This document shows, piece by piece, positions 3,698 through 55,381 of a stretch of 64,000 nt of DNA. The DNA comes from Octopus sinensis (taxonomy: Eukaryota): contig NC_042998.1 of assembly GCF_006345805.1 (NCBI RefSeq), positions 139,686,001-139,750,000 of the forward strand, written 5' to 3'. Below the pieces are notes generated by a model. That model worked only from the letters and a program-made list of their open reading frames with translations. It was not told the DNA's origin and searched no databases. The position numbers were made by a program, and so were the translations under genes. Numbering within the stretch: the first letter of the stretch is position 1; every line of letters begins with the position of its first letter.

Positions 3698-3945
3698 ATG
3701 ATAGGGACGTATTTTGCAAAAAATACTTGATATAGTGACAATATTTGGAGATTTCCTTAAAATATAAATCATTAAATGTATATTAAAAGAAAAGTCTTTG
3801 AATAACAACGACACAAATCTTATGGTAGGAAATTTTCGTATGGTCTGCAAGCGCATTCGCTTTCAAGTTTTTCAAACACACATGTAATGGTGTGATCCGT
3901 AAATGCATAGACGTACATATATACATACATACATACATACATACA

Positions 3946-3979
<34 letters not shown>

Positions 3980-4019
3980 CAAGTGTGCATATTTGTATGT
4001 GTGTATGTGTGTGTGTGTA

Positions 4020-4220
4020 GGTGCAAGCGTTGCTGCCTGGGAAGAAGTTCGCTTTCCATCCACATGGTTACGGGTTCAGTCCCACTGTGTGTGTGTTTGT
4101 GTTTGCGTTTGTCCCTCACCACCGGTTGACAACTGGTGCTGGTTTGTTTACGTCGCCATATACTAGCGGTTCGGCAAAAAGAGACTGATAGAATAAGTAC
4201 TAGGCTTTAAAAAATAAGTA
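4020..4220 (+). mobile_element. SINE family A, degenerate and 3'-truncated at a Penelope junction
   Basis: GGTTCAGTCCCACTG B box and tail GCGGTTCGGCAAAAAGAGAC, ending at AATAAGTAC. Confidence 0.8.
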
Positions 4221-5572
4221 CTCGCCACTTCATCTTTCGGGGATATCCCCTCACCACTATCCACACTGCCCTTGTACGTTCTGTGGACCTTATCTCTGCT
4301 CGCTCTCCTCGCACCCGTCGTGCCGTTGCTGGCCTCCCGTTTCCTCTCACCTACCGCCCATCCACCCTTCCCCTCTAACACACCATTCTCCGAACCTTCT
4401 ACCGACTCCAGTCCGACCCTTCCCTCCTTCAAACCAGTCCAAACCTACGTGACCTCCTGGTCCAAATTTTCTTCTCTAACCCCACCTCTCAACCTGTCTT
4501 GTCTCCTGCTCCTGGCCACGCTGCCACACTTGCCCCTACCTCTCCAACACCACCACCCTCACAAGCACCCATCATCGTCCCTATCATATCACTGACTCCT
4601 TTACCTGCACTTTTAGCAACGTCATTTACTGCATATCCTCCTCTTTCTTCCCTTCTCCGTACATCAGTGCTTGGCTGACCGGTTCGCGGAGCACCTCCGA
4701 GACATTAGACTCGGCAATGACACCCCGGTCTCGTGCCTTTTCCGCTCTATCTGTTATTCATTACAGCACTTGTCTGTGTTCGGATTGTCTTTGTACAGGG
4801 GCCATCCTAACTCACGCCTTCGCCGTGAACAAGAATTAATCTTCTTTCTTCGCTCCTTTGCTTCACATGGGCTCTCCTCTTCATCTGACTCCCCTCCTCT
4901 CTTCTCTTCAGCTGACACCTACTTCATTTCTTCACTCCTACCCACCTTTCCTCTTCTCTCTTCTCTCTTACCCTAACATCTACTTCCTCTCTTCACTCTT
5001 ACCCACCCTCTCCCTTCATTAATACCCACCCCCCATACATCCCACTCCTACTTCCACACCTCCGCCCTCACATCCTCACCCCAAATCCACACCCTGCCCT
5101 CTCATCCCCACACCTCACACCACCACACACCACCACACTACCACATCAAATCACACCACCCCACCCACTCCGCACACGCTAGCACTGACCACTTCCCAGA
5201 ACCCACACCTTCATCTACACACCCAAACCTTCATCTACACACCCACACGCACACATCCACACGTCAAAGTCACCAGCCCCTATCCACACGCACATACACA
5301 CACGCACGCGCACCTTCGTTTTGGGATCACAAGTACTTTATTATCGCCCCTTCTTCCTAGCTCTCCCGTCCAACTATCTTCAACCATTCGCCATCCACAA
5401 GTTTTTTTTCTCTTTCTGTTTATTTCATCGTGTTCCTTTCTGTTGAAGAGCGTAGGCTCGAAACGTATTAGACTTTCTCACCTTCCCGGGCGTCAAACTA
5501 GTTCACCTGCTTGTTGTTTATACACCTGTCTTCGTCTTTTGTTTTTCTGTAAATTGCAGCTATATATACGCC
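4221..5572 (+). mobile_element. Penelope-like element, 5'-truncated: RT C-terminus, GIY-YIG endonuclease, 3' terminus
   Basis: RHFIFRGYPLTTIHTAL from 4223 (PLE RGYP motif); SFTCTFSNVIYCIS and LADRFAEHLRDIRLGNDTPV...RLRREQELIFFLRSFASHGL (about 4590-4875), typical of PLE GIY-YIG; frameshifted; 3' end 5400-5572 homologous to 31982-32200. Confidence 0.88.
5435..5476 (+). ncRNA. Minimal hammerhead-ribozyme-like motif at PLE 3' end (variant core CUGUUGA)
   Basis: CTGTTGA-A-GAGC-GTAG-GCTC-GAAAC-GTA: PLE-type HHR layout with 4-bp stem II; core has U where the consensus CUGANGA has A. Confidence 0.55.
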
Positions 5573-5582
5573 TTGGGCTCCA

Positions 5583-6017
<435 letters not shown>

Positions 6018-6340: not shown

Positions 6341-7023
6341 ATCACTCTGCATACCTGGAACACACCATGGATCTACAATATAGAACGGTGATGATCTATA
6401 ACCCCAGACTCTGTCACCAGTATATGCGGAGTTGTACTAACAGAGCTTATAAAGTATTTTGCCCGGATTGATCGGCCCTCACTAATAACTTTGTTTTATA
6501 TACATATATTTCGTGTTAGCTTAAGAAGCGATGCTCGGTACCAGAATTTTCGACTCGATTCAAATATGACAAACTACTCCGAATCCTTGTTAGAATGAAC
6601 ATTCGCATAATTGGAGTCTGACCCGGCTAACTTTTACTGGCATCAAGTCGTATAAGTTGTAACATATAAATACTTATACACATATACTGGTATTCCCGTG
6701 TCATTAAAACATGACATCCATGTCATGTTTTAATGGCAGTAAGTAAGCTGAAGGTGATATTTATTAAAGTAAGCTGAATGTGTGATATTTATACATTTAT
6801 ATCACAGAGTTTTTACAACACAACCTACCTGGCTAGGTTCCTATTAAAGTTCATTCTCCAAAAGTTGTATAACATGATGACAAGCTGTTACGGTGAAACA
6901 TAGGTACATCATAATATATACATCTTATTTAATATACGTTCACTTGCATATCTTACCTATGGTTAATACAAATAAGTTCCCATATAAAATGTAATTTTCA
7001 TATGCTAAAGTAAACACATGAGT

Positions 7024-7285
7024 GGAGGCGCGTGGCTTAGTGGTTAGGGTGTCAGCATCATGATCGTAAGATTGTGGTTTCGATTCCTGGACCGGGCGAT
7101 GCGTTGTGTTCTTGAGCAAAACACTTCATTTCACGTTGCTCCAGTCCAGTCAGCTGGCAAAATGTGTAACGCTGCGATGGACTGGCGTCCCGTCCCGCTG
7201 GAGAAGACATACGCCATTGAAACCAGAAAACCGGGCCCATGAGTCTGGCTAGGCTTTAAAAGGGTGCATTTATTATTTTTTATTT
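7024..7285 (+). mobile_element. SINE family D (GGAGGCGCGTGGCTTAGTGGTTAGGG head; TTGAGCAAAACACTTCATTTCACGTTGCTCCAG core)
   Basis: Homologues at 23885-24225, 37965-38222(-), 40718-40960, 45035-45260. Confidence 0.88.
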
Positions 7286-8199
7286 AAAGTAAACACATAC
7301 ATTTTAAACAGTACGCATGTACAGCGTACAGTGTTGCTCCATTCTACATTCCAGGAAACATAACCTCATAACTAACCTCTCCTAACATCTCCACAACTGC
7401 ATTGAATTTAAAATATATACATACACAAACACATACGCATACATATACCTGCACACACATACACATATATAGTATAATATATATCTATATATGGAAGTAT
7501 GTATATATGTATATATGCAGGTGCGTGGTAGAAGCTGTTGCATAACTCTGTGTACGTCGTGTGGTATGCCCACATGGTTACACATGTTTGCATGTGTGAA
7601 CAGTAACACCGCGTGCATGTGTTTATTGTCCGAGTATGTATGCACGTTCGTTTTTTTGAGATTTTGTATTTTCATACTGTTCTTTTTTTTTGTCGTTGAG
7701 TGTGTTGTATGAGTGGGTGTATATAAGTTGCATGCTGTATATAATGTAGGTTCATAGTGTGCGCGCACATCTGTGTGTACTCGCGCGCGTGCACTGCTAC
7801 AATAAATGTATGTATATGTGTAAGTTGAATGCATGCGTGTGTCCGGCGTAATTTCGTGCACGTTTGAATATTAATGTGCTTTTCATGGGGTGGGGTGGGG
7901 TGAGGGGTGTATCTGGTATAGTGCATGAATGAGTGTCTTGTGTGCGTGTGTCTGTGAGTGTGTGCGCGTGCGTGTGTTTGTGCGCGTGTCGTTGTTGCGT
8001 GTTGCGATTGTATAAGACGTTCGTGTGATGTGATTAGGAGAAACTAATTGGGTGTGTTGTATTTGGGTATGAATGTCATGTATGATGACTACACTTCAGC
8101 TTATCTCCCCTATATCTCTCATTAAACTCTTTTCTTTTATTTTCTCACTTCCTGTGACGTTTAATTTGGTGTTATTTTGAGATTCATGAGTAGACTTAT

Positions 8200-9603: not shown

Positions 9604-10432
9604 TATACAATATTGGTTTCAAATTTTGGCGCAAGGCCAGCAAGTTCAGGGGGTAGGGGTAAGTCGATTACATCGACCCTAGTACGAAGCTGGTACTTAT
9701 TTTATCGACTCCCAATAGAATGAAAGACAAAGTCGACCTCGGCAGAATTTAAACTCAAAACGTAAGGACGGACGAAAAATGCCGCTAAGCATTCTTATTT
9801 CTTTACTGCCTACAAGGGGCTACAGACAGAGAGGACAAACAAGGACAGACAAACGGATTAAGTCGATTATATCGACCCCAGTGCGTAACTGGTACTTATT
9901 TAATCGACCCTGAAAGGATGAATTTGAACTCAGAGCGTAACGACAGACGAAATACCTATTTCTTTACTACCCACAAGGGGCTAAACACAGAGAGGACAAA
10001 CAAGGACAAACAAACGGATTAAGTCGATTATATCGACCCCAGTGCGTAACTGGTACTTATTTAATCGACCTCGAAAGGATGAAAGGCAAAGTCGACCTGG
10101 GCGGAATTTGAACTCAGAACGTAGCGGCAGACGAAATACCGCTAAGCATTTCGCTCGGCGAGCTAACGTTTCTGCCAGCTCGCCGCCTTACACATTACAT
10201 ATAACTTTAGTTTTCTAAGGCGGCGAGCCGGCAGCTTCGTTAGTACGCCGGGTGAAATGCTTAGCAGTATTTCGTCCGTTTTAACGATCTGAATTCAATA
10301 TTTCAGCGAGATCGACTTACCCTTTCATCCTTTCGGGACCGATAAATAAGTATCAGATGAGCACTGGAATCGATGTAATCGATTTAGCCCTCCCTGAAAC
10401 TGCCGGCCTTGTGCCAAAATTTGAATTCAACA
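9604..10432. mobile_element. Cluster of SINE family B (GGCGGCGAGCTGGCAGAA head): minus-strand multimer plus plus-strand monomer
   Basis: Repeated GTCGACCTCGGCGGAATTTGAACTC and GTCGATTATATCGACCCCAGTGCG modules; plus copy 10218-10432. Confidence 0.9.
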
Positions 10433-14735: not shown

Positions 14736-14767
<32 letters not shown>

Positions 14768-14966
14768 ATATAGATAGATAGATAGATATATAGATAGATA
14801 TATATATATATACATACATTATATGCATGCATGTTGGAAGATATATATAAATATATATTGTGAGAGTGTATGTGTGTGTATACATACGTATATATACATA
14901 CATATATGTATCTATACATAAACACACATATACGTATGTATGTATGTATGTATGTATGTATGTATG

Positions 14967-15058
<92 letters not shown>

Positions 15059-15786
15059 CACGCATATACACATATATATAACTTATAGCATATGTATATA
15101 TATGTATACATTGTATACGTATATATGCGGATATAAGCGGAGTGTATGCATGTATATGTGTGCATATATATGTCGCATTACTAACGAGGGTTGTAAATAT
15201 TCAATACAAATGATTCATATATGTTTAATAACATAGATTGTTTGCTAATTATAAGAAGAATTGTAAAGAAGTCTGGAGCTTAATATAGACAAAATAACGT
15301 CGGAGTGGCTTTGATAATGAATAACCTGTCACAGACCATTGTCAAAATTATTCTTAGAAAGGCATGGTGTCTTTCTGTATAGATTTTGTGAGTGTGAGCG
15401 TGTGTGTATATTTGTTCATGTGTGTGTGTGTATGTGTTGTGTTTATGTGCGTGTATTTGCGTGTGTACATGCGTGAATGTGTGTATGATATTTGCATATA
15501 AGTAGACGTATATTTATATGAACGCTTATAATTAAGTTCGTTGATCTAAGTGCGTTGATATAGGTGCAAGGATATTTAGAAATGCATACACAGAACAATC
15601 ATACAAACATACAACCATGCATACGTACATGCATACATACATACATACATACATACATACACTCACACATACATACATACATACATACATAAGTACATAG
15701 ATAGATAGATAGGTACATACATACATACATACATACACACATACATACATACATACACACACACATACATACATACATACATGCAT

Positions 15787-15819
<33 letters not shown>

Positions 15820-16337
15820 TACATACATTCATACATACATAAATACATAGATACATACATACATACATACATACATAAATACATAGATAGATAGATAGAT
15901 AGATAGATACATACATACATACATACATACATACATACATACATACATACATACATACATACATACATACATACATAAACACACACAAACAAATATGTGC
16001 GCGCGATCGAGCGCACATATACATATTCCATACATACATCTATACCTACGTGTATAGTAATTAGATGTGCTGTATAAGTGTGTAGATATATATGGGTGGA
16101 TATGTATATGTGCGTAAACATATACAGGTTTCCATACGCTCGTGTATATGTATGTATATTTTTACATACATTTGCGTGCGTGCATTAGTATTTGTGTGTG
16201 TGTGTGTGGTGTGTGTGTGTTTGTGCACTTTAGCGTGCATGTACATATGAACACGTGTATTTATACATAGATGCGTTTAATATATGTGAGTGTGTGTGTG
16301 TGTATTTATATATATGTATATATATATATATATTATA

Positions 16338-16371
<34 letters not shown>

Positions 16372-16588
16372 ATATATATATGTATTATATATTATATATA
16401 TATATATAATATATATATATGTATATATATGTATATATATATATATATATATAATAATATATATATATATGCGTGTGTGTGTATGCATATGTATGTATAT
16501 ATGTGTGTGTATATATATATATGTATGTATGTATGTATATATATATATATATATAATATATATATATATGTATATATATGTATGTATG

Positions 16589-16629
<41 letters not shown>

Positions 16630-16790
16630 TATATATATATTATATATATATATATATATTATATATATATGTATATATATATGTGTGTTTGTGTGTACAT
16701 ATATACACGTATGCATATATGTATCTGTGTGTTTGTGTATGTGTATGTGTTGTGTATGTGTATGTGTTGTGTATGTGTGCATATATACCA
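14735..16790. repeat. Large compound microsatellite block: (AT)n, (ATAC)n, (ATAG)n, (GT)n
   Basis: Direct reading; short unique spacer near 15180-15380. Confidence 0.95.
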
Positions 16791-17024: not shown

Positions 17025-17735
17025 TGGCAGAATCGTTAGCACGCCGGGCGAAATGCGTAGCCTAATTTCGTCTGCCGATACGTTCTAAATTCAAATTCCG
17101 CCGAGGTCGACTTTGCCTTTCATCCTTTTTGAGGCGGCGAACTGGCAGAAACGTTAGCACGCCTGGCGAAATGCATAGCTGTATTTCGTCTGCCGTTACG
17201 TTCTGAGTTCAAATTCCGCCGAGGTCGACTTTGCCTTTCATCCTTTCGGGGTCGATTAAATAAGTACCAGTTATGCACTGGGGTCGATATAGTCGACTTA
17301 ATCCGTTTGTCTGTCCTTGTTTGTCCTCTCTGTGTTTAGCTCTTTGTGGGTAGTAAAGAAGTAGGTATATCGTCTGCCGCTACGTTCTGAGTTGAAATTC
17401 CGCCGAGGTCGACTTAGCTTTCGTCCTTTTGGAGTCGATAAGTTAAGTACCAGTGAAACTGGCACTTGAGATCGATGCAATCGACTGGTCCCCTCCCCCA
17501 AAATTTCAAGCCTTGTGCCTTTAGTTGAAAGGATTATTGTTATAATTAAGGCTGCGGGCTTGCAGATTCGCTAACACGCCGGGCAAAATGCTTAGCGGCA
17601 TTTCGTGTACCTTTACGTTCTGAGTTCAAATTCCGCCAAGGTCAACTTGCCTTTCATCCTTTCAGTGTCAATAAATTAAGTTGCAGTCAAATACTGAGAT
17701 CGATGTGATCGACTATCTCCTTTCCCCCAAATCGG
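17025..17735 (+). mobile_element. SINE family B cluster including a head-to-tail dimer
   Basis: Heads at 17025, 17131, 17548; junction AAAGAAGTAGGTATATCGTCTGCC near 17357-17380. Confidence 0.9.
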
Positions 17736-18429: not shown

Positions 18430-18835
18430 AGGCGGCGAGCTGGCAGAACCGTTGGCACGTCGGACGAAATGCTTAGCGGTATTTCGCCTGCCATTACGTT
18501 CTGAGTTCAAATTCCGCCGAGGTCGACTTTGCCTTTTATCCTTTCGGGGTCGATAAATTAAGTACCAGTTACGCACTGGGGTCGATGTAATCGACTTAAT
18601 ACCTATGTCTGTCCTTGTTTGTTCCCTCTATGTTTAGCCCCTTGTGGGTAATAATGAAATAGGTATTTCGTCCGCCTTTACGTTCTGAGTTCAAATTCCG
18701 CCGATGTCGACTTTGCCTTCCGAATTCCTTCCGGGGCCGAAAAAATAAGTACCCATTGAATATTGGGATTGATATAATCGACTTACCCTCCACTCCCGAA
18801 CTTGTTGGCTTTGAGCCCAAATTTGAAACCATTAT
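18430..18835 (+). mobile_element. SINE family B dimer
   Basis: Head AAGGCGGCGAGCTGGCAGAA; junction AATGAAATAGGTATTTCGTCC near 18653-18673. Confidence 0.9.
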
Positions 18836-19438: not shown

Positions 19439-20177
19439 GCGTCATTTTCATCATCATTAGTTTAATACTGGCTTACACATGTCATGTTTTGGATAGGCCT
19501 ACAACTCAATTTCTTCCTATGTAGTTTGAAACTGAAGTCCAGTCTCTCCCGATCAACCACACAAGCTCATGCCCTGTAACAAGATAATAATTGCTATTTA
19601 TCTTTTAGCCAAGTGGAAAGGTCCTTTACAAAGTCCCCCGGACTGGTGGTAGAGTAGAGAAGGAGTGGAAGGAAGGTATCCGCAAACCAAAGAACTGACT
19701 CGATTACCTGTATAAGTGGACTCCGTTAAAGACACCAAAGATTCCAAGGAGCGTTATTAAATCTAACGACGGATTAATTTTACCATCCATTTAAGCCACG
19801 GCGGGATTTGAACAGGATCTGAACGGGATTTGAATATCGTAACGTATGATTGAGAAATAATCACATCTTAGGAATGAGAGGTGCCCGACCGGTGAGATAG
19901 CAAAACTGAAAAATATAAAATCACCTTTTTGGTTCTAATGCAGTTATGGCGAATCTTTTCACCATGTGTAACGAAATTATAATTTATTTAATAACCCTAT
20001 TACACCGGGTAACACGATTTTTGTCCTTGAGTAGCATCTGTTCTTTCCTATTTACTCACCCTAGAAAGTATCAAAAATGGCTAATATTTCTATCAAACTT
20101 TGTTTTTGTTACATTTATTCGACTTTGGAAGAGTCGACTTTGATGAAGTTTGGACTCGAAACACTAAAGACGGATTA

Positions 20178-20600
20178 AATACCTATTTCTTTATTGCCCA
20201 CAAGGAGCTAAACATAGAGGGGACAAACAAGGACAGACAAAGGGATTAAGCCGATTCGATCGACCCCAGTGCGTAAATGGTACTTAACTTATCGACCCCG
20301 AAAGGATGAAAGGCAAAGTCGACCTCGGCGGAATTTCAACTCAGAACGTAGCGGCAGACGAAATACCTATTTCTTTACTACCCACAAGGGGCTACACACA
20401 GAGGGGACAAACAAGGACAGACAAACGGATCGAGTTGATTATATCGACCCCAGTGCGTAACTGGTACTTATTTAATCGACCCCGAAAGGATGAAAGGCAA
20501 AGTCGACCTCGGCGGAATTAGAACTCAGAACGTAACGGCAGACGAAATACTGCTAAGCATTTCGCCCGGCGTGCTAACGTTTCTGCCAGCTCGCCGCCTT
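20178..20600 (-). mobile_element. SINE family B dimer
   Basis: Two units with junction GACGAAATACCTATTTCTTT near 20358-20377; head ends CTCGCCGCCTT. Confidence 0.9.
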
Positions 20601-24564: not shown

Positions 24565-24936
24565 GCATACATACACACATACACACACACATACACATAC
24601 ATACATACATACATACATACATCATACATACATACATACATACATACATACATGCCTACATGCATACATACATACATGCATACATATATACATACATACA
24701 TACATACATACATGCATACATACATACACACATACACACACACACACATATATATATATGCATACATACATGCCTACATACATACATACATACATACATA
24801 CATACATACGTACATACATGCCTACATACATACATACATACATACATACATGCATACATATATACATACATACATACATACATACATACATGCATACATA
24901 CATACACACATACACACACACACATATATATATATG

Positions 24937-24997
<61 letters not shown>

Positions 24998-25260
24998 GTA
25001 CATACATGCCTACATACATACATACATACATGTATACATAGATGTACACGAACATACATACGTGCATGCTTACATGCATACATATATACATGCATACATA
25101 AAGACATACATATATTCATAGATACATACATACATGCATAAATACATACATGCATACACAAATACATACATACCTACATGCATACATACACACATACATA
25201 CAGACGTACATACATACATATATACATGTGCATATATGCATATTCAAATGTGTGTGCGTA
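24565..25260. repeat. (ATAC)n-dominated microsatellite
   Basis: Direct reading. Confidence 0.96.
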
Positions 25261-26221: not shown

Positions 26222-26993
26222 CGTCGAGCTGGCAGAGACGTTAACACGCCGGGCGAAGTGCTCAGCGGTATTTTGTCTGCCATTACGTTCTGAGTTCAAA
26301 TTACGCCGAGGTCGACTTTGCCTTTCATCCTTTCGGGGTCGATAAATTAAGTACCAGTTGCGCACTGGGGTTGATATAATCGACTTCATCCGTTTGTCTG
26401 TCCTTGTTTGTCCCCTCTGTGTTTAGCCCCTTGTGGGTAGTAAAGAAATAGGTATTTCGTCTGCCGCTACGTTCTGAGTTCAAATTACGCCGAGGTCGAC
26501 TTTGCCTTTCATCCTTTCGGGGTCGATAAATTAAGTACTAGTTGCGCACTGGGGTTGATATAATCGACTTGATTCGTTTGTCTGTCCTTGTTTGTCCCCT
26601 CTGTGTTTAGCCCCTTGTGGGTAATAAAGAAATAGGTATTTTGTCTGCCATTACGTTCTGAGTTCAAATTACGCCGAGGTCGACTTTGCCTTTCATCCTT
26701 TCGGGGTCGATAAATTAAGTACCAGTTGCGCACGGGGTTGATATAATCGATTTGATTCGTTTGTCTGTCCTCTGTGTTTAGCCCCTTGTGGGTGGTAAAG
26801 AAATAGGTATTTCGTCTGCCGCTACGTTCTGAGTTGAAATTCCGCCGAGGTCAACTTTGCCTTTCATCCTTTCGGGGTCGATTAAATAAGTACCATTTAC
26901 GCACTGGGGTCGATATAATCGACTTAATCCGTTTGTCTGTCCTTGTTTGTCCCCTCTGTCTTTAGCTCCTTGTGGGTAGTAAAGAAATAGGTA
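26222..26993 (+). mobile_element. SINE family B tetramer (one head, four bodies)
   Basis: GGTA junctions at 26267, 26451, 26635, 26806, 26990 (periods 184, 184, 171, 184); flanked by (ATC)n tracts. Confidence 0.93.
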
Positions 26994-30887: not shown

Positions 30888-31115
30888 GGCGGCGAGCTGG
30901 CAGAAATGTTAGCACACCGGGCGAAATGCTTAGCGGTATTTCGTCTGCCGCTACGTTCTGAGTTCGAATTCCGCCGAGGTCGACTTTGCCTTTCATCCTT
31001 TCGGGGTCGATAAATTAAGTACCAGTTACGCACTGGGGTCGATGTAATCGACTTAATCCGTTTGTCTGTCCTTGTTTGTCCCCTCTGTGTTTAGCCCCTA
31101 TTGGGTAGTAAAAAA
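30888..31115 (+). mobile_element. SINE family B monomer
   Basis: AAGGCGGCGAGCTGGCAGAAATG...GCCCCTATTGGGTAGTAAA. Confidence 0.9.
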
Positions 31116-33160: not shown

Positions 33161-34033
33161 CTTTGAACGGCAGATCGAGAAATTAATTTTTGTAATTAAA
33201 CACTTTCAAACTTCGGACACTGGTAGAATGTGTCATATAAAACATCTTTTACTCTTAGTGTTGTTGAGAAAAGTTTGTATTTTCAAAGTTATTTCATGTT
33301 AAAGTAGTCGTGTTTCGGTAATTTCAACCAATCAATGACGTGCATTCAGCTGAATAAAATTACTGTTGTTGTTTGTCAACAATAACTTTCGGCGGTGTAT
33401 ATTTCGTTTGTCACTGTTATTTATGACATATTTAATCTCAGTTACGTTTGTATGAATAAACGAGTGTATCTGAAGTATGTTTACTTCATGACACCACCAC
33501 AATCGTTCGTGCATTTCTACTGCTTTAAGGTTTTTTTTCTGTTTATCAGCAACTATTTTTGGAAAGACTTTTTTTGCCCCCACTACCCCTACCCCTCCAA
33601 TTTGTTCATTTTTCACTTTTTTCCGTAACTCTAACCCTAAAATCCCAGTCCTAACCCTAAAATCCCAACCCTAACCCTAAAACCCTAAAACCCTAACCCG
33701 AACCCTAAAACCCTAACCCTAACCCTAAACCCTAAAGCTAAAACCAGTACAAACGCACGAAGGATGACATAAATAACAGTGACAAACGAAATATACACCG
33801 CCGGAAGTTGTTGTTGACAAACAACGGCAGTAATTTTATTCAGCTGAATACACGTCACTGATTGGTTGAAATTACCGAAATACGATTTCTTTAACACGAA
33901 ATAACTTTAAAAATATAAACTTTTCTCAACAACACTAAGAGTAAAAGATGTTTTATATGACACATTCTACCAGTGTCCGAAGTTTGAAAGTGTTTAGTTA
34001 CAAAAAATTAATTTCTCGATCTGCCGTTCAAAG
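33161..34033. mobile_element. Non-autonomous element with ~270-bp TIRs and internal telomere-like repeat
   Basis: Left arm 33161-33429 (CTTTGAACGGCAGATCGAGAAATTAATT...) is the near-perfect reverse complement of 33764-34033. Confidence 0.9.
33626..33740. repeat. Interstitial degenerate telomeric repeat (CCCTAA)n / (CCCTAAA)n
   Basis: TAACCCTAAAACCCTAAAACCCTAACCCGAACCCTAAAACCCTAACCCTAACCCTAAACCCTAA. Confidence 0.9.
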
Positions 34034-46566: not shown

Positions 46567-46657
46567 ATGTCTCTCATAGAATTGGGTCAGATGAAGTATT
46601 TCGAGCCGTCACGAAGAATCCGCAAAAATTCTGACAGGTCAGAAAGCTACGAAATAG
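46567..46657 (+). CDS. Candidate upstream coding exon of the GT32 gene
   Basis: ATG 46567, 30 open codons, donor AG|GTGAGG at 46657/46658 in phase 1; joins the 54321 acceptor in frame (MSLIELGQMK...ESYEI-DLPRLDTNRNSI-MQGIPK); CpG-rich context. No transcript evidence. Confidence 0.35.
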
Positions 46658-48666
46658 GTGAGGCTTGGTATTATATTTTGTATCTGCTAATGGCTTTTTG
46701 TTTTTCTCTTTGTGTTCTGTTTACGCCTATATTGGGATTTTAATCTGACCAATTGTTTCACTTTTTTTTTGAGGTCGCTTGAAACAAGTAATTATATCAA
46801 ATGTGATTTATATTATGTAAAGTAATCGATACATGTATATTTAGTAAAAGATTAGCTTTATTATTATTATTATTATTTTATTCAAGTATTTTTTTGTCTG
46901 CCTTTCGCAATCTCGAACTGGCAGTAATAATATAAGTACGTGTTATCAATATTTCTTTCTGGCTCTCCCTACATGGCCTCCGGTAGCTAGCTAGTGTTCT
47001 TTAGCTCCAAGTTAATCCCTATAGAGCTGATCTACGATCAAAGGCATTCTAGCCATGACCATCCTGTGTCTTTAAGGATATACATGTCCACATTACCTGC
47101 CTTTATATAATGTTATGATGTGATTTGAGAAAGATTTTAGCTGCTATTTCTAATAAATCGAGTGATCGTGCAGAGTTTCTCGTCTTGGTTTACGCCGCCT
47201 CTCTCTTGCTCGCTACACACACTCAAATGAAGTAGAACGTTTCATTAAGTTCCTCTACATGGTCTTTCGACCTGTTATGAATAGTCGCAGAATCTCTCTT
47301 AAATCACAACCTACCGTCTTAAATATCAGATAAGATAATGCTGCCGTACAATATCTTTCAAACTATGGCTTTGCCATGCATGTTACGGAAGTGATACCTT
47401 GGGCTGAACAACATTTAACAATCCGATTTACAGTCTGTGGGTTTACGTGCGTTAGGTGAGCGTGCCACAATCACCGCGGATGGTTAAATTTGTCTAACGG
47501 TGTATGAACTGAGAAAGAAATATTTTATGTCCGTTTGAAATCCTATTAGGTTTAGCACAGTATCACGACGACCTATAACAAAATGAACACCATATGCCAA
47601 GCCAGCATGGGTGCGACTACATATTCGCTCGACCTTCCTGAAGTAGTAGGCTAAAATGTTTTAAATCATACTTTACAGTCTTAGAAAAAGGTAGAAAAGG
47701 ATTTTTTGGATGATGTGACCCCATTGTGCTCTGCGTATAGCAAAAAGACAGGATGGTCACCGCTGATTTGCCTTTATTTATCGTCTACTCAGAGCTAGCT
47801 TGGAGTTAACCATTCGCCGAAGAAATCTCTATCTCTCCAAACAGCGCAGGGGATACTAAAGCTAATATATGTGTGTGTGGTATAACACCAGAATGGCCCC
47901 CTGTCAACGTTATTTCCTCATAACTTTCTTAATACTTATGTTTTAATGGAATTTTCCGGGATTACGATTATGTCGGGAAAAGAATTTACCTATTTTTTTC
48001 CCTTTTTAGGAAGAGTGGCTAATCATTTTTCCTCTCCAATATGACTTTAGCACTTTTCATTTTTAATTTTTATTATTCAGAACATCGACACTACGTCGTC
48101 TACTCGAAAATATTTTAAAACGTTTTATTTACAAAAAAAAAAAAAAAAAAAAAGCGTTTTAGCCCGCTACCTGTCCTAAGCATTTTCATAAGTTTGTCTT
48201 AAACGTCCATGTTTGTTTTCAGTCTTTAGAATTAGTCCTTGTTTTATATGTTCTGAGTAATATAAAGCCTTCCTCTCATAAGTTCCAAGTAACTCTAGTG
48301 GTTGAAAAAATTGGAAATATGTATCACCTAGAAAATATGTCCTGTACATCATGTGTGATGAATAAATAAATAATTCTCCCTCTTTGTTTCTCTCCTTTCT
48401 CTCTCACTTTCCCACTCTCTTACTCTTCCTTTCTCTCGGACTCTCCCTCGCTTTTTCTTACTATCTATCTTTCTCTATCTATATCTCTCCCATTTATAAA
48501 GAACAAAAGATCTTGAGTACGTTGAGAAAGAAAATATTTTGAAAGATCAATCATAAATATCAGGCAGTGACAACGGAAAGGTCTGCTTCAAGGTGGACAG
48601 CAAAACAAAACACTAATATTGTAAACCAAAGTTTGAAGGGATAGAATCTCAGGATAGTAGACTCAC

Positions 48667-48903
48667 CATGGCTGGCATTCAAAACTTCTTAACAACAGAC
48701 AGCAACATACTGGCAGTTTAACGACTGGTGCAAAATTTTGAACTTGATGTAAGAGAAAATTCCTAAACACCAAGTTTTGAAGTGATTCTTTCTCATGACA
48801 GGCATTCAAAACTTCTTCGTGACGGATGGCAACACATTGACGATTTAAAGGCTGGCACAAATTTTTTAGCTTGATGTAACACAGAATTCCTAAATGCACC
48901 CTC
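48667..48903. repeat. Diverged tandem dimer, 127-bp period
   Basis: GGCATTCAAAACTTCTT at 48674 and 48801; CTTGATGTAA and AATTCCTAAA in both units. Confidence 0.75.
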
Positions 48904-48914
48904 CTGTAAACTTT

Positions 48915-50535
48915 AAACCCACAAGGTTATGGTCTTTGGCTTGCCGGGTCTTCTCATGCACAGCATATTTCCAAGTTTTGGTCAATAGTCATTTCCTTGG
49001 TGAGGCCTAAAGTTCGAAGGTCATGCTTCACCACTTCATCCCAGGTCTACCTCTTTCACAGGTTCCCTCAACCGCTAAGATGTGGCACTTTTTCACACAG
49101 CTATCCTCATCCATTCTCGCCACATGACCATACCAGCGCAGTCATCTCTCTTGTACACTACATCTGATGCTTCTTAGGTCCAACTTTTCTCTCAAGGTAC
49201 TTACACTCTGTCAAGTATGCACACTGACATTACACATCCAACAGAGCATACTGCCTTCATTCCTTGCGAGCTTACGCATGTCCTCAGCAGTCACAGCCCA
49301 TATTTCACTGCCATGTAGCATGGCTGTTCGTACATATGCGTCATACAGTCTACCTTTTACTCTGAGCAAGAGGCCCTTTGTTACCAGCAGAGGTAAGAGC
49401 TCTCTGAACTTTGCCCAAGCTATTCTTATTCTAGCAGCTACACTTTCAATGCACCCTCCCCCGCTACTGACTTGGTCACCTAGGTAACGGAAGCTATCAA
49501 CTACTTCTAGTTTTTCTCCCTGGAATGTGGCGGAAGTTGTTCTCTATGCATTTTTTGTGTTTATTGCTCCCTAGCATCTGCCACATACAAAAACTATCTT
49601 CCCAGTTAGCCTTCCTTTGATATTTCTGCACCTCTTATGTGTCCATAGCTTACACTGGGTACATCTTATAGAGTTTCTACCTACACCTCTACTACAGATC
49701 GAGCAGGGCCATCTACCTGAAGGGATTTGTGGTTTGCCTGCCTTCCTACTTATTAGGACCTTGGTTTTAGCTAGGTTGACTCTTAGGCCCTTTGACTCTA
49801 ATCCTTGTTTCCACACTTGAAACTTCTTCTCTAGTTCTGATAGTGACTCAGCAATTAGAGCAAGGTCATCAGCATAGAGGAGCTCCCAGGGGCATCCTGT
49901 CTTGAATTCCTTCGTTATTACCTGGAGGACTATGATAAATAGGAGTGGGCTGAGGACTGAACCTTGGTGGACCCCTACCTCTACCCTAAATTCTTCAGTG
50001 TACTCGTTGCCAACCCTCACCTTACTTGCACGGCTCTCACTAACCATTCATCTATCCCTAGTTTCTTCATTGACCGCCAGATAAGGGATCAGGGGACCCT
50101 GTCAAAGGCTTTCTCCATGTCAACGAAAGCCAGGTACAGGGGCTTATCTTTGGTTAGGTATTTCTCCTGCAGCTGTCTTACCAGAAATATAGCATCAGTG
50201 GTGCTTTTCCCTGGCACGAAACCAAACTGTATCTCATCCAAACTGACTCTCTCCCTAATTAGTTGGGCTACGACCCTCTCCATGACCTTCATTACCTAAT
50301 CCAACAGCTTGATACATTTGTAATTATTTGTATCTAAATCGTCACCTTTACTTTTGTAGCAGTTGACTATTATGCTGCTACACCAGTCATTGGGTATGAT
50401 TCCTTCGTGTATCACCTGGTTAACTATACAGGTGACTAGGCTATAGCCGACACTGCCAGATATTTTGAGCATCTCTGCAGCAATTCCTGATGGGCCTGGG
50501 CTTTCCTTGTCTTCATACTTTTAATTGCTTTATCT
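48915..50535 (-). mobile_element. RTE LINE, 5'-truncated ORF2: RT, PHD-like finger, C-terminus
   Basis: LAFVDMEKAFDRVP, GVHQGSVLSPLLF, LLYADDLALI, then C4HC3 finger; few disruptions. Confidence 0.95.
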
Positions 50536-50859
50536 CCATCCAACCCGTGCTAGCATGGAAAACGGACGTTAAACGATGATAATGATGATGATATATATAT
50601 ATAGTATATTTTATAGGAATTTAAAAGTTATAGCCTGTCATTGAGTGACCAATTGGTTTCATACCTATAAAGCACTTAGCAGTAAAAGTGATTTGTCAGA
50701 TTCAAATGGCTGAAGGTACATGACCTCTCTAGGAGCCGGAAGAAGAAATATTTAATGGTCAGTTGATTTTGTAAACAAAAAATAATTGTCCATGCTATGG
50801 GTGAAACATATATATATATGTACAAGTTCAGGCTATTGAACGTAGAGAATGAATGGGAG

Positions 50860-52425
50860 GGAGTCTCCCTTGGTCCTTGGTCCATCATTGCTGAGATGCT
50901 CAAAATATCTGGTAGAGTAGGATACAGTCAAGTCACCTGTGTAGTTAATCAGGTTATTCAGGAGTGTGTAATCGTCTGTGACTGGTGTAGCAGCATCATA
51001 GTTAGCTGCTACAAGGTTAATGGATGTTCCTTAGAAATAATTATAGGGGCATCAAATTGCTGGACCAGGTGATGACTAAACCCAATTAATTAGGAACAGA
51101 ATTAGACTAGATGAAACGCAATCTGGCTTTGTGCCAGGGAGAAGTATTACTGATGCTATTTTCATAGTCAAGCAACTGCAAGAGAAGTATTTAGCCAAGA
51201 ATAAGCCATTGTACTTGACATTTGTTGATCTGGAGAAAACCTTTGACAGAGTATCTCGCTCAGTGATATGGTGGTCTCTGAGGAAGCTGGGGGTAGACAA
51301 ATGATTTGTGAAAGCAGTACAGGGATGCTGTTGGTAAGGTAAGAATTAACCACGAATACAGTGGTGAATTTAGTATATAGGTAGGTGTTCATCAATGCTC
51401 AGTCCTCACCCCATTCATCATCAATTATAACAGGGGAATTTAAGATCAAAAGCCCATGGGAATTATTATATGCTGATATGTAAATTTGAAGTCATAGCAG
51501 AATCTGTAATGGAACTAGAAAAGAAACACCAGGTTAGGAAGCAAAACCTGGAATTAAAGGGCCTTAAAGTTAACTTAGCAAAGGCCATGATCCTAGTAAG
51601 CAAAAAATCAGACAGGACCTTACCCATTTCAGGTAAATGACCCTGCTTGATATGTAGGAAAAGTGTAAGCAGGAATTCTATTCGGTGAACCCAGTGCAAG
51701 CTATGGACACACAAGAGGTGCAGTAGACTAATAGGAAAGTTAACAAAGAAAGTATTGTTTGTATGTGGAAGATGTACAGGAGCCATAAAGTCAACAGTTA
51801 CATGAGAAATTGACTTTCTCAAATGCCTCAGACTCTCTAGAAGTAGGGAATAACTTCTGCTACCTTTAGACCAAATTAGCAGTAAAATAGGATGAACTGA
51901 AAGTGTAATTGCTAGGATAGGAATAGGATGGAGACAGTTCAGAGAACTTTTACCTCTGTTGGCAACCAAAGGTCTCTCTCTCTCTCTCAGTGAAAAGAAG
52001 AATATATGATACATGTATACAAACAGCAATGCTACATGATAGTGAAATATGGGCCCTGAATGTAGAGGACATGCAAAAGCTAGAGAGGAATGAAGCTTGT
52101 ATACTCTGCTGGATGTGCAGTGTCAGTGTACATGAGCAACAGGGCACTAGTATATTGAAAGAAAAATTAGGCATAAGAGGAATTAGTTGCAGTGCGCAAG
52201 AGAGAAGACTGCACTGATGTGGTGATGTGATGCATATAGATGTGGACTGTTGCATAAAGAAGTGTCAATCACTTAAAATGGATGGAACTTGTGGAAGAGG
52301 GAGACCCAGGAAGACCTGGGATTAAGTATTGAAGACTGATCTCAAGACATTGTGCTTTGCAAAGTAGATGACAAAGAACCAAGATATTTGGCACCTTGTT
52401 GTATTCAAGAGGACTTGTCCACCAC
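50860..52425 (+). mobile_element. Second, more decayed copy of the same RTE family, inverted relative to the first
   Basis: GCTGAGATGCTCAAAATATCTGG, FVDLEKTFDRV, PCLICRKSVSRNSIR*TQCKLWTHKRC; many stops. Confidence 0.9.
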
Positions 52426-53189
52426 AGCAGAATTGATATCCTAAAATGACCATAGTAATGCTTGTCTATTAGGGTCTCTGCCCCCCCCCTTTCATCCTCT
52501 CTACTCTGTCAACCATCTCTCCCCATATTACATCCCTTAACACCAACCACTTTCTCTATCACCTGAGAGTAGAATAGGCACATACTACATCCCATGGCTT
52601 TCTCAATTAACTTTTTCCCCTACCTCAAGCCACTTCCATTTCCGCTTGTCTTCCCCTGCCTACTGCCTCCACCAATCACCTCCTTTGTTATCACCCTCAA
52701 TGCCCCCATATATCTACTGTAACCCCTGCCCCCACACCTCGCCTATATTTGTCACCATCATTTGCTAATTACCTCATCCTGTCCACTCACCCACCTCTAT
52801 ATCATCACACTTCTCACTATCCCCAATGTTCCTCAATAGCATGTACTGTCACATCTTTGCCATCATCTTTCTCTCACTATCACTCTGTATCTTACTTTCT
52901 AACTCACTCTTCTTTCCTTTTCAACCAGGGTATCCATGTGTCTACTCTACAGCAAGATACCTATATCTGTTGCTCTATATCTTAACCCTTATTGTTCAGA
53001 TTAATCTGTCAAATGTATTGCTTATTTGTTCACATTATTTTGAATTATTCAGGTTCAAGAGTGGTGTCCACAATGTTTGCTTGTGACTTTGTTAATTTTC
53101 TACATATGTAATTGAAATTTTGACCAGTTGGTGCTTGTGCAAATTTTTTCCACTTTATAGAAATCAATATTTTCTCTGTTGACATCCGC

Positions 53190-53830
53190 CTCAGTTAATT
53201 TTGCTTTTCTCCCTGTTCTGTGGTTTCTGGAAGAAAAGCCCTCATGTAACTGAGATGCAATGTCAACCTGAAATTTCAAATGGTCTAGTCCTTTGGTGGC
53301 GGAAGTACCTTGTGGCTTTTTACATAATTTTTGAATTAACTATAGTTAGACATAATGCTGGAAATATATGGATCACCATACCTTATATCAGGACTCCAGT
53401 AGTTCCTCAGTCGAAGAAGCTGCTTCATACCAAACATAATGTTCAAGGTAAAATAAAGCTCGCATTTCTGCAGTATCAGTTGCTGCCATAGTGGATTAGG
53501 TTTTCCACAAATAGAAATTATGTGTTGAGCATTTGTTTTCTCCACAACAGTTTCACAAAAACTTTTTGATAAAAATAAAGATGATAGTCCAATGGTTGAG
53601 CATTGGGAGGTTAGACTGTGTTGTGGACTAGTCTTTTCTGTGAAATCAGGAATTGTGGTTGATGTAGTAATCTTTAACCATGTTGCCATAATGATTCCAA
53701 TATCATTTTCATCACTCTCATTATCAAAATCTTCCATGTCCAACGAAGATTCATAAATATCAATATCAGATTTGTCTGAAGACAAATCACTGATGTTTTC
53801 GTTTTATATTTTGTACATCATCAAGAGTAA
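53190..53830 (-). mobile_element. piggyBac-type (PGBD4-like) transposase N-terminal remnant
   Basis: Acidic N-terminus, PDFTEKTSP, FCETVVEKTN, LNIMFGM...NYWSPD...YISSIMS. Confidence 0.75.
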
Positions 53831-54302
53831 AATCTTCAAAGTTGGAATTGCCACTTACTGACACCAAATTATTAAAAATAGTTTACACTTCTCTTCAAAT
53901 GTTGAAAAAACCAAGTAGTCACAAAAATTTCACAGTATTTTTATTTGAATAAAGGCAGAAAGGGCTTTATTTCACATTATCTCAAAGCAACGAGAATTCA
54001 ATAACATGATTTGTTTTTTTAGCAGTTTCATAGAGGAATCAGATACAGCCAGATTAAAAGGTACTAGTGATGGTGTCATGCAAAAAGCACTGGTCATGGT
54101 GCTACATAAAAAGCACAAGTGTTGTTGCCACATAAAAAGCACTGGTGCAACTTACTGCCAATATCCTGGTAAATTAAGACAACATAAAATAAAGTATCTT
54201 ACTCTGAGAAATTATTTACTGCAAATATGAAATGCTGTTGTTCTTATTTTATAATTTAAAATTTACATAATAAATTACATTTTATTATATTCAAAATTTT
54301 TC

Positions 54303-54320
54303 TTTTCTATATTTCTGCAG
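54303..54320 (+). promoter_or_regulatory. Splice acceptor of the GT32 exon
   Basis: TTTTCTATATTTCTGCAG|ATCTGCC; polypyrimidine tract plus CAG. Confidence 0.75.
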
Positions 54321-54355
54321 ATCTGCCACGCCTGGATACTAATCGGAATTCCATC

Positions 54356-55381
54356 ATGCAAGGGATACCAAAATTACCTCTCAAAACCCTTTCCTTAGGG
54401 TCTTTTTTTATATTCATTCTCCACTGGTTGGTAAAATTTGAGCAGGTGCGTGAACATGGCAGTTTCTATGATTTAAATATCGCTGTAGAAAAGGACTTCC
54501 AACCTTACGGAATGAAAGAACCAGAATTGTTCCCTGTTACAGGAGTAAGAAGAATTCCAAAAATTATCCATCAGACATGGAAGGACAAAATGGTACCTCG
54601 GAAACTGACATCTTGGGTGAAATCATGGGTTAAAAATCATCCTGATTGGGAATATTGGTTATGGACAGATGCCAGTGCTCGAGAAATGTTGGCTGATAAA
54701 TATCCTTGGTTCCTGTCAACATTTGATAATTATCCTGAAAATATTCGACGGGCTGACGCTCTGCGATATTTTGTACTTTATGAATTTGGAGGTGTTTATG
54801 CCGATATGGATATGGAAAGTTTCAAATCTGTTGACCCATTATCCTTGAAATATTCCTGTTTTCTTGGACAAGAACCATATGAACATCCTGTTTTGGATTC
54901 TAATTTTGAACATATTGTAATCAATGCCATCATGGGTTGCCGTAAAAATCACCCTTTTATGAAAAAGGTAATGGAAAGTTTGCCAGATTTTTCACACATG
55001 TGGAATGTCCTCGACAGCACAGGTCCACATTTTTTAACTCTCCACTACCGTCAATACCAGAAAAATAATATACCCCCTGATGTCGATGATGGGGTTTATT
55101 TAGCACCAGCTGAATATTTCTTTCCAACAATTGATCCTGTAAAATTTTTCTGGATGCGGACTCAATGCGCTAAGTTTGACAAACTCACCAAAATTCAACA
55201 GAAGGCATGCAAAAGCCTTAAAGTAAAAGGCGTCAAGCGGACAATACCTTCAATATCTTTTGCTACACATCATTGGATTCATACTTACCTAGATCTGAGC
55301 ATCACATTGAAGGGACCCGTTGAAATTCACACTGTCGTTCCACACGTGAAAATATATAAAAGTAGTAAAACTTTGAGTTAG
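54356..55381 (+). CDS. Glycosyltransferase family 32 (Gly_transf_sug/DXD; OCH1/SUR1-like), type II membrane protein, 341 aa
   Basis: Intact ORF; hydrophobic anchor aa ~12-26; IPKIIHQTWK (67-76), RRADALRYFVLYEFGGVYADMD with DxD at 150-152, STGPHFLT (TGP 222-224), terminal HHW (305-307); 11 open in-frame codons upstream within the exon, so the N-terminus may be longer. Confidence 0.93.
   Translation: MQGIPKLPLKTLSLGSFFIFILHWLVKFEQVREHGSFYDLNIAVEKDFQPYGMKEPELFPVTGVRRIPKIIHQTWKDKMVPRKLTSWVKSWVKNHPDWEYWLWTDASAREMLADKYPWFLSTFDNYPENIRRADALRYFVLYEFGGVYADMDMESFKSVDPLSLKYSCFLGQEPYEHPVLDSNFEHIVINAIMGCRKNHPFMKKVMESLPDFSHMWNVLDSTGPHFLTLHYRQYQKNNIPPDVDDGVYLAPAEYFFPTIDPVKFFWMRTQCAKFDKLTKIQQKACKSLKVKGVKRTIPSISFATHHWIHTYLDLSITLKGPVEIHTVVPHVKIYKSSKTLS

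Follow-up and report, generated by a model that had tools for sequence, protein, structure and literature searches.

A two-exon gene of Octopus sinensis for a probable type II Golgi glycosyltransferase of family GT32

Sur1/Csh1, the guanosine diphosphate mannose (GDP-Man):inositol-phosphoceramide (IPC) alpha-mannosyltransferases, and Och1, the yeast initiating alpha-1,6-mannosyltransferase, are members of glycosyltransferase (GT) family GT32. What kind of enzyme does an animal make from a gene of the same sequence type, and where did that gene come from? The question is raised by a locus of Octopus sinensis. The window, as the whole stretch of DNA analysed here is called, comprises 64,000 nucleotides (nt; contig NC_042998.1, positions 139,686,001 to 139,750,000), and by far its longest open reading frame (ORF), 54356..55381 on the forward strand, encodes 341 amino acids (aa). 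In a first-pass annotation, made from the letters of the sequence, this ORF was taken for a single-exon, uncharacterised GT32 gene of the Sur1/Och1 type. According to the analysis presented here it is very probably part of a functional O. sinensis gene for a type II Golgi membrane GT32 glycosyltransferase of 383 aa encoded by two exons. The protein is an ordinary member of a known family and the gene is already annotated in RefSeq. Its function is indeed uncharacterised: in the literature, no paper was found on this GT32 family or an "IPC mannosyltransferase" in molluscs, on the enzymes of mollu-series lipids or on cephalopod glycolipids.

Gene structure and protein architecture

The best database match of the ORF is an Octopus bimaculoides protein of 383 aa, which extends 42 residues beyond it at the N-terminus. 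With this protein as the tblastn query, residues 1-30 were located at window positions 46567..46656 with 100% identity and the remainder from 54320 onwards. The coding sequence (CDS) reads join(46567..46657, 54321..55381), two coding exons for 383 aa, and the 7663-nt intron between them (46658..54320) is in phase 1 and of the GT-AG type. Both splice sites could be read from the sequence, the donor as GAAATAG followed by GTGAGG (46657/46658) and the acceptor as TTCTGCAG, which ends at 54319-54320 with exon 2 starting at 54321. The true start is the ATG at 46567 in the upstream exon, the first ATG of the 341-aa ORF being internal (Met43). The spliced product is identical in 383 of 383 residues to a protein (P0467) recorded as CAI9717608.1 in O. 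vulgaris and as XP_029657558.1 in O. sinensis, the RefSeq name of which, "inositol phosphoceramide mannosyltransferase 2", is based on similarity only. The upstream exon and the identity of the spliced product with the annotated protein rule out the single-exon gene of the first-pass annotation. Its observation that the catalytic region lacks introns was correct, since one exon holds the transmembrane segment together with the entire catalytic domain.

Window positions 36567-64000 (27.4 kb) are 100% identical to chromosome CM016860.1 of the O. sinensis assembly GCA_006345805.1. The window is 97-99% identical to O. vulgaris and approximately 91% identical to O. bimaculoides, and the locus is syntenic across the three octopus genomes. 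Between O. sinensis and O. bimaculoides the CDS shows 12 synonymous and 6 non-synonymous differences (dN/dS, the ratio of non-synonymous to synonymous change, 0.125), which indicates purifying selection on the gene. Orthologues from bivalves and gastropods show 57-63% identity to the octopus protein. In decapodiforms (the squid/cuttlefish group) the orthologue was found as a complete CDS without interruption, on contigs of approximately 1.2-1.5 kb from 52 blocks of Logan sequencing-run assemblies, and these intron-free contigs are apparently spliced transcripts. An intron comparison, which the first-pass annotation had proposed, revealed the two-exon layout (a short first coding exon followed by one large exon) also in O. 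bimaculoides and in the scallop orthologue. Lineus and one Sinanodonta paralogue have no introns in their coding regions, and the Ridgeia gene has three coding exons.

Motif residues are numbered here according to the 341-aa ORF unless the 383-aa protein is named, and invariance was judged in an alignment of 43 family members. All the motifs reported earlier were found again, namely IPKIIHQTWK (aa 67-76), DxD (aa 150-152), TGP (within aa 221-224) and HHW (aa 305-307), and so was the basic insert with its pair of cysteines, C271 and C285 (Table 1). Further invariant residues are D105, D134, R137, D150 and D152, and the invariance of the motif residues goes far beyond chance. The 42 residues missed by the 341-aa ORF carry the cytoplasmic-tail motif SRRIRKNSDR, which is SRRFRKNSDR in the decapodiform orthologue. 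The only hydrophobic segment of the protein lies near the N-terminus. There are only four cysteines (C168, C195, C271 and C285), and no N-glycosylation sequon was found in the 383-aa protein. In an AlphaFold model built on the family alignment (mean pLDDT, the predicted local distance difference score, 93.8) the N-terminal helix covers ORF aa 9-34 and the helices of the insert aa 261-272 and 279-291. From the N-terminus, the protein thus consists of a short cytoplasmic tail that bears a conserved dibasic motif, a single signal-anchor helix, a short stem, which is ordered, and a catalytic domain of the GT-A type. This is a type II membrane protein, as annotated before, with a competent active site of a retaining GT32 enzyme.

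The Pfam family PF04488 was matched with 81.7 bits (gathering cut-off 23, E 6.7e-23), and it was also matched by 43 of 43 relatives. The model of the large clostridial/LifA-type toxin glycosyltransferases (PF12919) was not reached (17.4 bits vs a cut-off of 23.6, approximately 20 residues around the DxD motif). Matches to capsule-type GT models are likewise below threshold and limited to the DxD region; the likeness to PF12919 reflects shared GT-A ancestry only. The best solved-structure match found by Foldseek is yeast Och1 (9n3s; E 3.5e-11, template-modelling score 0.53, probability 1.00), followed by retaining GT-A enzymes, and many glycosyltransferases of giant viruses are strong fold matches in BFVD. 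The residues to which donor binding was assigned in a model of Och1 are T103, D139, D171, R174 and D187-M-D189, and the hydrophobic middle residue in the DxD motif is the pattern reported for retaining GTs (PMC12312940). These residues (T103, D139, D171, R174 and D187-M188-D189) align to the invariant T74, D105, D134, R137 and D150-M-D152 of the octopus protein. The Pfam match, the DxD and donor-site residues and a predicted GT-A fold nearest to that of Och1 together place the protein in CAZy family GT32.

Relatives, origin and specificity

Relatives were sought among 1.84 billion representative proteins, with the best 120 matches listed per search. There are 512 proteins at E <= 1e-30, and among the best 140 approximately 115 match the family profile over its full extent, C-terminal part included. 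The named animals among the matches listed are molluscs (cephalopods, gastropods and bivalves), nemerteans (Lineus and Tubulanus, with many paralogues) and annelids (Paralvinella, Ridgeia and Capitella). No arthropod, cnidarian, echinoderm or chordate name is among the matches listed, which does not prove absence from those phyla. The octopus protein is a full-length match to the spiralian family, including the C271...C285 insert, the HHW tail and the signal anchor, and its gene falls in a mollusc-wide orthologue clade; bivalves have further paralogue clades. These sequences constitute a large, intron-poor spiralian GT32 family which is distinct from Sur1/Csh1, Och1 and A4GALT/A4GNT.

Some further members of the family are single-exon genes on gene-sparse animal-like contigs, sometimes in tandem. 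One of the many Lineus longissimus paralogues (P0262, 794 aa) contains two complete GT32 family domains in tandem. A gene-sparse metagenome contig of the Joint Genome Institute (JGI; L170, 7.9 kb) carries full-length single-exon members in tandem at 3854-5323 and 6620-7552 and is probably animal DNA within a metagenome. In Ridgeia piscesae (L165, 4814-5009) extra degenerate copies of aa 131-150, with which the second coding exon begins, are found in the upstream intron, three of them at 85-90% identity and a fourth weaker one. The locus of the Haliotis orthologue is not on record.

In bacteria of many phyla and in giant viruses the relatives are 31-48% identical over the core only. The Cys-pair insert is missing in all 160 bacterial and viral loci examined, and it is present in a haptophyte, chytrids, a green alga and a picozoan. 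A C-terminal module specific to animals was considered and rejected, because in the alignment the terminal His motif is universal and the Cys-pair insert, restricted to eukaryotes, is also found in protists and chytrids. In a bootstrapped neighbour-joining (NJ) tree of the shared core region, Sur1/Csh1 form a clade with 100% support and no spiralian members, and the Spiralia form their own clade (67%). The phylogeny proposed in the first-pass annotation thus separates these two clades, with the backbone left unresolved: a joint clade of Spiralia and the protists with the Cys-pair insert has 3% bootstrap support, and the giant viruses appear as a possible sister group. As the insert occurs in eukaryotes and not in bacteria or giant viruses, recent bacterial transfer into molluscs seems unlikely. 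The gene is old in Spiralia, and it may stem from ancient eukaryotic retention with loss or from an old transfer into the spiralian stem. To this extent the choice among the origins left open in the first-pass annotation has been narrowed.

The enzyme would transfer a sugar with retention, i.e. in alpha linkage, from a nucleotide sugar held via Mn2+, the DxD motif and the C-terminal His, by an SNi-like mechanism as proposed for other retaining GT32 enzymes. The basic Cys-pair hairpin could be a disulphide-stabilised luminal element which probably shapes the acceptor site or the contact with the membrane, and H305 may serve as a C-terminal metal/phosphate ligand like H463 of Och1. As the donor, GDP-Man is our best guess, and we give it an even chance. 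It is suggested by Sur1/Csh1 and Och1, the closest characterised enzymes by sequence, which use GDP-Man; by the missing Gb3_synth domain, the mark of the branch of A4GALT/A4GNT that uses uridine diphosphate (UDP) sugars; and by bacterial and metagenomic proteins in which related cores are fused to Anp1-type domains (the mannosyltransferase family GT62). As the acceptor, a membrane-proximal glycoconjugate such as a glycolipid is proposed more tentatively, at somewhat less than an even chance. It is made plausible by a short, ordered stem, a basic insert and the action of Sur1/Csh1 on a sphingolipid, and this evidence is weak.

Several points weigh against this picture of the gene and its product. 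The transcript evidence comes from a related cephalopod. The Golgi location, the C271-C285 disulphide and metal binding by H305 were deduced from sequence and model. The conserved donor-site residues occur throughout GT32 and do not tell GDP-Man from UDP-sugars, so the residues modelled for the Och1 donor proved uninformative as a guide. The identity to Sur1p (38%) concerns the core only, and the specificity can differ from that of Sur1. The structural neighbours after Och1 (YeGT, SetA and PaTox) use UDP-N-acetylglucosamine (UDP-GlcNAc) or UDP-glucose (UDP-Glc). Finally, the vertebrate Golgi is not known to have a GDP-Man transporter.

The main competitor is an enzyme that uses a UDP-sugar (galactose, Gal; GlcNAc; N-acetylgalactosamine, GalNAc; Glc; or xylose, Xyl) and decorates the N- or O-glycans, mucins or polysaccharides of secreted proteins and not lipids. 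Users of UDP-Gal, UDP-GlcNAc and UDP-GalNAc are included in GT32, the donors of the structural neighbours just named point the same way, and mollusc glycans are so diverse that a review expects transferases with new specificities; big lineage-specific expansions are also typical of enzymes that diversify surface glycans. However, the GDP-Man-using Sur1/Csh1 are far more similar in sequence than any UDP-using enzyme that the searches gave, and the hallmark domain of A4GALT/A4GNT is missing, so that we consider such an enzyme possible, if on the whole unlikely. A more specific form of the GDP-Man proposal, in line with the alpha-mannosyltransferase for mollusc-type glycolipids suggested in the first-pass annotation, would make the orthologue clade a Golgi alpha-mannosyltransferase on glycosphingolipids, possibly the GDP-Man:Man-beta1-4Glc-Cer (Cer, ceramide) alpha1,3-mannosyltransferase responsible for the Man-alpha1-3 step of the mollu-series core. 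The retaining chemistry, the sphingolipid substrate of the closest characterised relative, the single strongly conserved orthologue in gastropods, bivalves and cephalopods and a stem and insert suited to a membrane-embedded acceptor agree with it, and no enzyme for the Man-alpha1-3 step was found in the literature. Yet the literature gave no report of mollu-series lipids in cephalopods, and the many bivalve paralogues make the choice of the orthologue clade arbitrary. The family is equally expanded in nemerteans and annelids, which are not known to make mollu-series lipids, and hence it is no mollusc-specific marker; nor is a GT32 enzyme known for the alpha1,3-mannose linkage. This assignment is therefore regarded as doubtful, with little probability attached to it.

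The automatic names in RefSeq, NCBI and UniRef (IMT2, CSH1-like and CSG1) amount to a claim that the protein is a true IPC mannosyltransferase, with which the identity to Sur1 over the core agrees. Against it stand the separate spiralian clade outside Sur1/Csh1 and the replacement of the hydrophobic C-terminal region of these enzymes by the Cys-pair insert and the HHW tail; IPC is not known to be made by animals. We find a true IPC mannosyltransferase very improbable, and the RefSeq name, which rests on best-hit similarity, is probably a misnomer. Least credible of all is that no working host gene is involved and that the sequence was recently acquired by horizontal transfer from a bacterium or a giant virus, contaminates the assembly or is a dead retrocopy. 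The identity of bacterial and giant-virus cores and the intron-free catalytic region could be cited in its favour, but the spliceosomal intron with its host transposon fragments, the synteny in three octopus genomes, the layout shared with the scallop orthologue, the low dN/dS and the eukaryote-type insert speak so clearly for a host gene that we give it practically no weight, and recent transfer or contamination has been dismissed on these grounds.

With a single strongly conserved mollusc orthologue and a catalytic domain that can be cloned from one exon, the gene offers a testable entry to invertebrate glycobiology. Should the donor be GDP-Man, luminal Golgi alpha-mannosylation would be established in a large animal branch, and a missing glycolipid enzyme might be assigned. 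If the enzyme mannosylates glycosphingolipids, spiralians have kept or anciently acquired a fungal/protist-style luminal mannosylation that vertebrates lack. Otherwise it is one further uncharacterised glycosyltransferase. The phyletic pattern makes a modest case study of patchy retention vs old transfer, and correcting the database name, a probable error given that the substrate to which it refers is not known from animals, would halt the spread of the error to further annotations.

Other features of the window

The coordinates of the gene, of the motifs of its product and of the transposon fragments are collected in Table 1. Of ten other long ORFs of the window for which Pfam matches were sought, six have none and coincide with (CATA)n, (TATA)n or (TA)n microsatellites, two more are without Pfam match and two are transposon fragments, both of them in the intron of the GT32 gene. 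Microsatellite arrays of these types are found at 1882-2451, 14736-15056, 15600-15977, 16303-16682 and 24566-25227 and overlap many of the other ORFs of at least 150 aa. A repeat resembling short interspersed elements (SINEs), approximately 184-230 bp long, occurs in many copies, in both orientations and partly in tandem (9957-10186, 17025-17360, 18432-18661, 20177-20597, 26222-26993 and 30889-31099). A copy of it is also found in the O. bimaculoides intron of the GT32 gene (L162, 17114-17343). In addition, there is a short interstitial array of telomere-like CCCTAA-variant repeats (33626-33736) and a GC-rich block at 4001-6000 (GC 0.485 vs approximately 0.38 elsewhere, with a strong C-over-G skew of -0.41). 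A minus-strand gene with WD40 repeats begins just beyond the end of the window.

Table 1. Positions in the window of the GT32 gene, of the motifs of its product (numbered as in the 341-aa ORF) and of the transposon fragments in its intron
Feature	Position	Strand	Remarks
Coding exon 1	46567..46657	+	Met1 to first base of codon 31; cytoplasmic tail including SRRIRKNSDR
Intron	46658..54320	+	Phase 1, GT-AG, 7663 nt; decayed transposon fragments; splice sites read
Reverse-transcriptase + PHD-finger fragment	49574-50047	-	Decayed ORF in GT32 intron
piggyBac-type DDE transposase fragment	53339-53785	-	Decayed ORF in GT32 intron
Coding exon 2	54321..55381	+	Rest of tail, signal anchor, stem, GT32 domain, stop; contains ORF 54356..55381
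Signal-anchor (transmembrane) helix PLKTLSLGSFFIFILHWLVK	54377..54436	+	Sole Kyte-Doolittle segment >=1.3 in the 383-aa protein
IPKIIHQTWK, beta1 nucleotide-binding motif, aa 67-76	54554..54583	+	H72, Q73, T74, W75 invariant
PF04488 Gly_transf_sug region	54599..54847	+	Includes T104-D105, R-A-D134-A-L-R137-Y, DxD; E 6.7e-23
D150-M151-D152, DxD metal/diphosphate-binding motif	54803..54811	+	Both aspartates invariant
S-T-G-P, aa 221-224	55016..55027	+	G223, P224 invariant; motif kept in bacterial, viral and fungal relatives
Basic helical-hairpin insert, aa 258-300	55127..55255	+	11 K+R vs 2 D+E
C271 and C285 within the basic insert	55166-55168 and 55208-55210	+	Both invariant
H305-H306-W307, C-terminal motif	55268..55276	+	H305 invariant

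Comparison with known GT32 enzymes

The bacterial and giant-virus "OCH1-like" GT32 proteins keep the H-H-W or H-x-W terminal motif and differ from the octopus protein in having neither the Cys-pair insert nor a signal anchor of its type. Many of them combine several domains in 800-1750 aa, and fusions to GT2 and Anp1 (GT62) are frequent. In one metagenome scaffold (L001, 1539-6389) a huge protein combines a GT32 core, 45% identical to octopus aa 64-259, with NTP_transf_5, GT2 and Anp1/GT62 domains, and in three further proteins (P0334, P0321 and P0333) a related GT32 core is fused to Anp1 and GT2. The GT32-Anp1 fusions recall the pairing of Och1 and mannan polymerase in yeast, here in one polypeptide. 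The uncharacterised members from Prymnesium, Polychytrium, Batrachochytrium, Nannochloris and a picozoan are approximately 30-35% identical to the octopus protein and share with it the insert with two cysteines, which lies between YFFP and the terminal His motif.

The octopus protein was also set against three CHARACTERISED GT32 groups, A4GALT/A4GNT, Och1 and Sur1/Csh1, and membership of each was ruled out by clade, C-terminal region, extent of alignment or PF04572. A4GALT (Gb3 synthase), A4GNT and Drosophila alpha4GT1 are GT32 UDP-sugar alpha-1,4-transferases. They share with the octopus protein PF04488, the retaining GT-A chemistry and the character of animal Golgi type II proteins, but the C-terminal Gb3_synth domain (PF04572) that defines A4GALT/A4GNT is missing from it: there was no match at E <= 1, and two of the 43 relatives match at 0.0046, which is below threshold. 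No A4GALT-type protein was found among the relatives listed by name. The protein was described as unlike A4GALT/A4GNT from the beginning, and it groups neither with these nor with a characterised metazoan clade.

Och1 (PDB 9n3s) is the best match among solved structures and has in common with the octopus protein the D-M-D motif, the donor-site residues and the type II Golgi topology. It is larger (480 aa) and its acceptor pocket differs; in sequence only aa 58-162 align (E 1.4e-11), the structural alignment gives 16-19% identity, and no full-length similarity to the alpha-1,6-mannosyltransferases Och1/Hoc1 was found.

By sequence, the closest characterised enzymes are Sur1/Csg1 and Csh1 (Imt1-3 in S. 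pombe). The Sur1 bait sequence proved to match the database Sur1p at 100%, and all later comparisons were made with retrieved sequences. Over aa 44-254, yeast Sur1p shows 38% identity to the octopus protein (E 6e-40), and its version of the first motif is IPKIIHQTYK, in keeping with the Sur1/Och1 sequence type recognised at the outset; this level of similarity is about that of the bacterial relatives and much better than that of Och1. Sur1/Csh1 and the octopus protein have in common IPKIIHQT(W/Y)K, RADAxRY, GG(V)Y.D.D, STGP and an N-terminal signal anchor. The match stops at approximately aa 254, where Sur1/Csh1 go on with a hydrophobic, membrane-embedded C-terminal region (Kyte-Doolittle segments 261-293 in Sur1 and 258-296 in Csh1, vs only the N-terminal 46-71 in the 383-aa octopus protein). 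Sur1/Csh1 are without the basic insert with its Cys pair and without the HHW tail, whereas the octopus protein has both.

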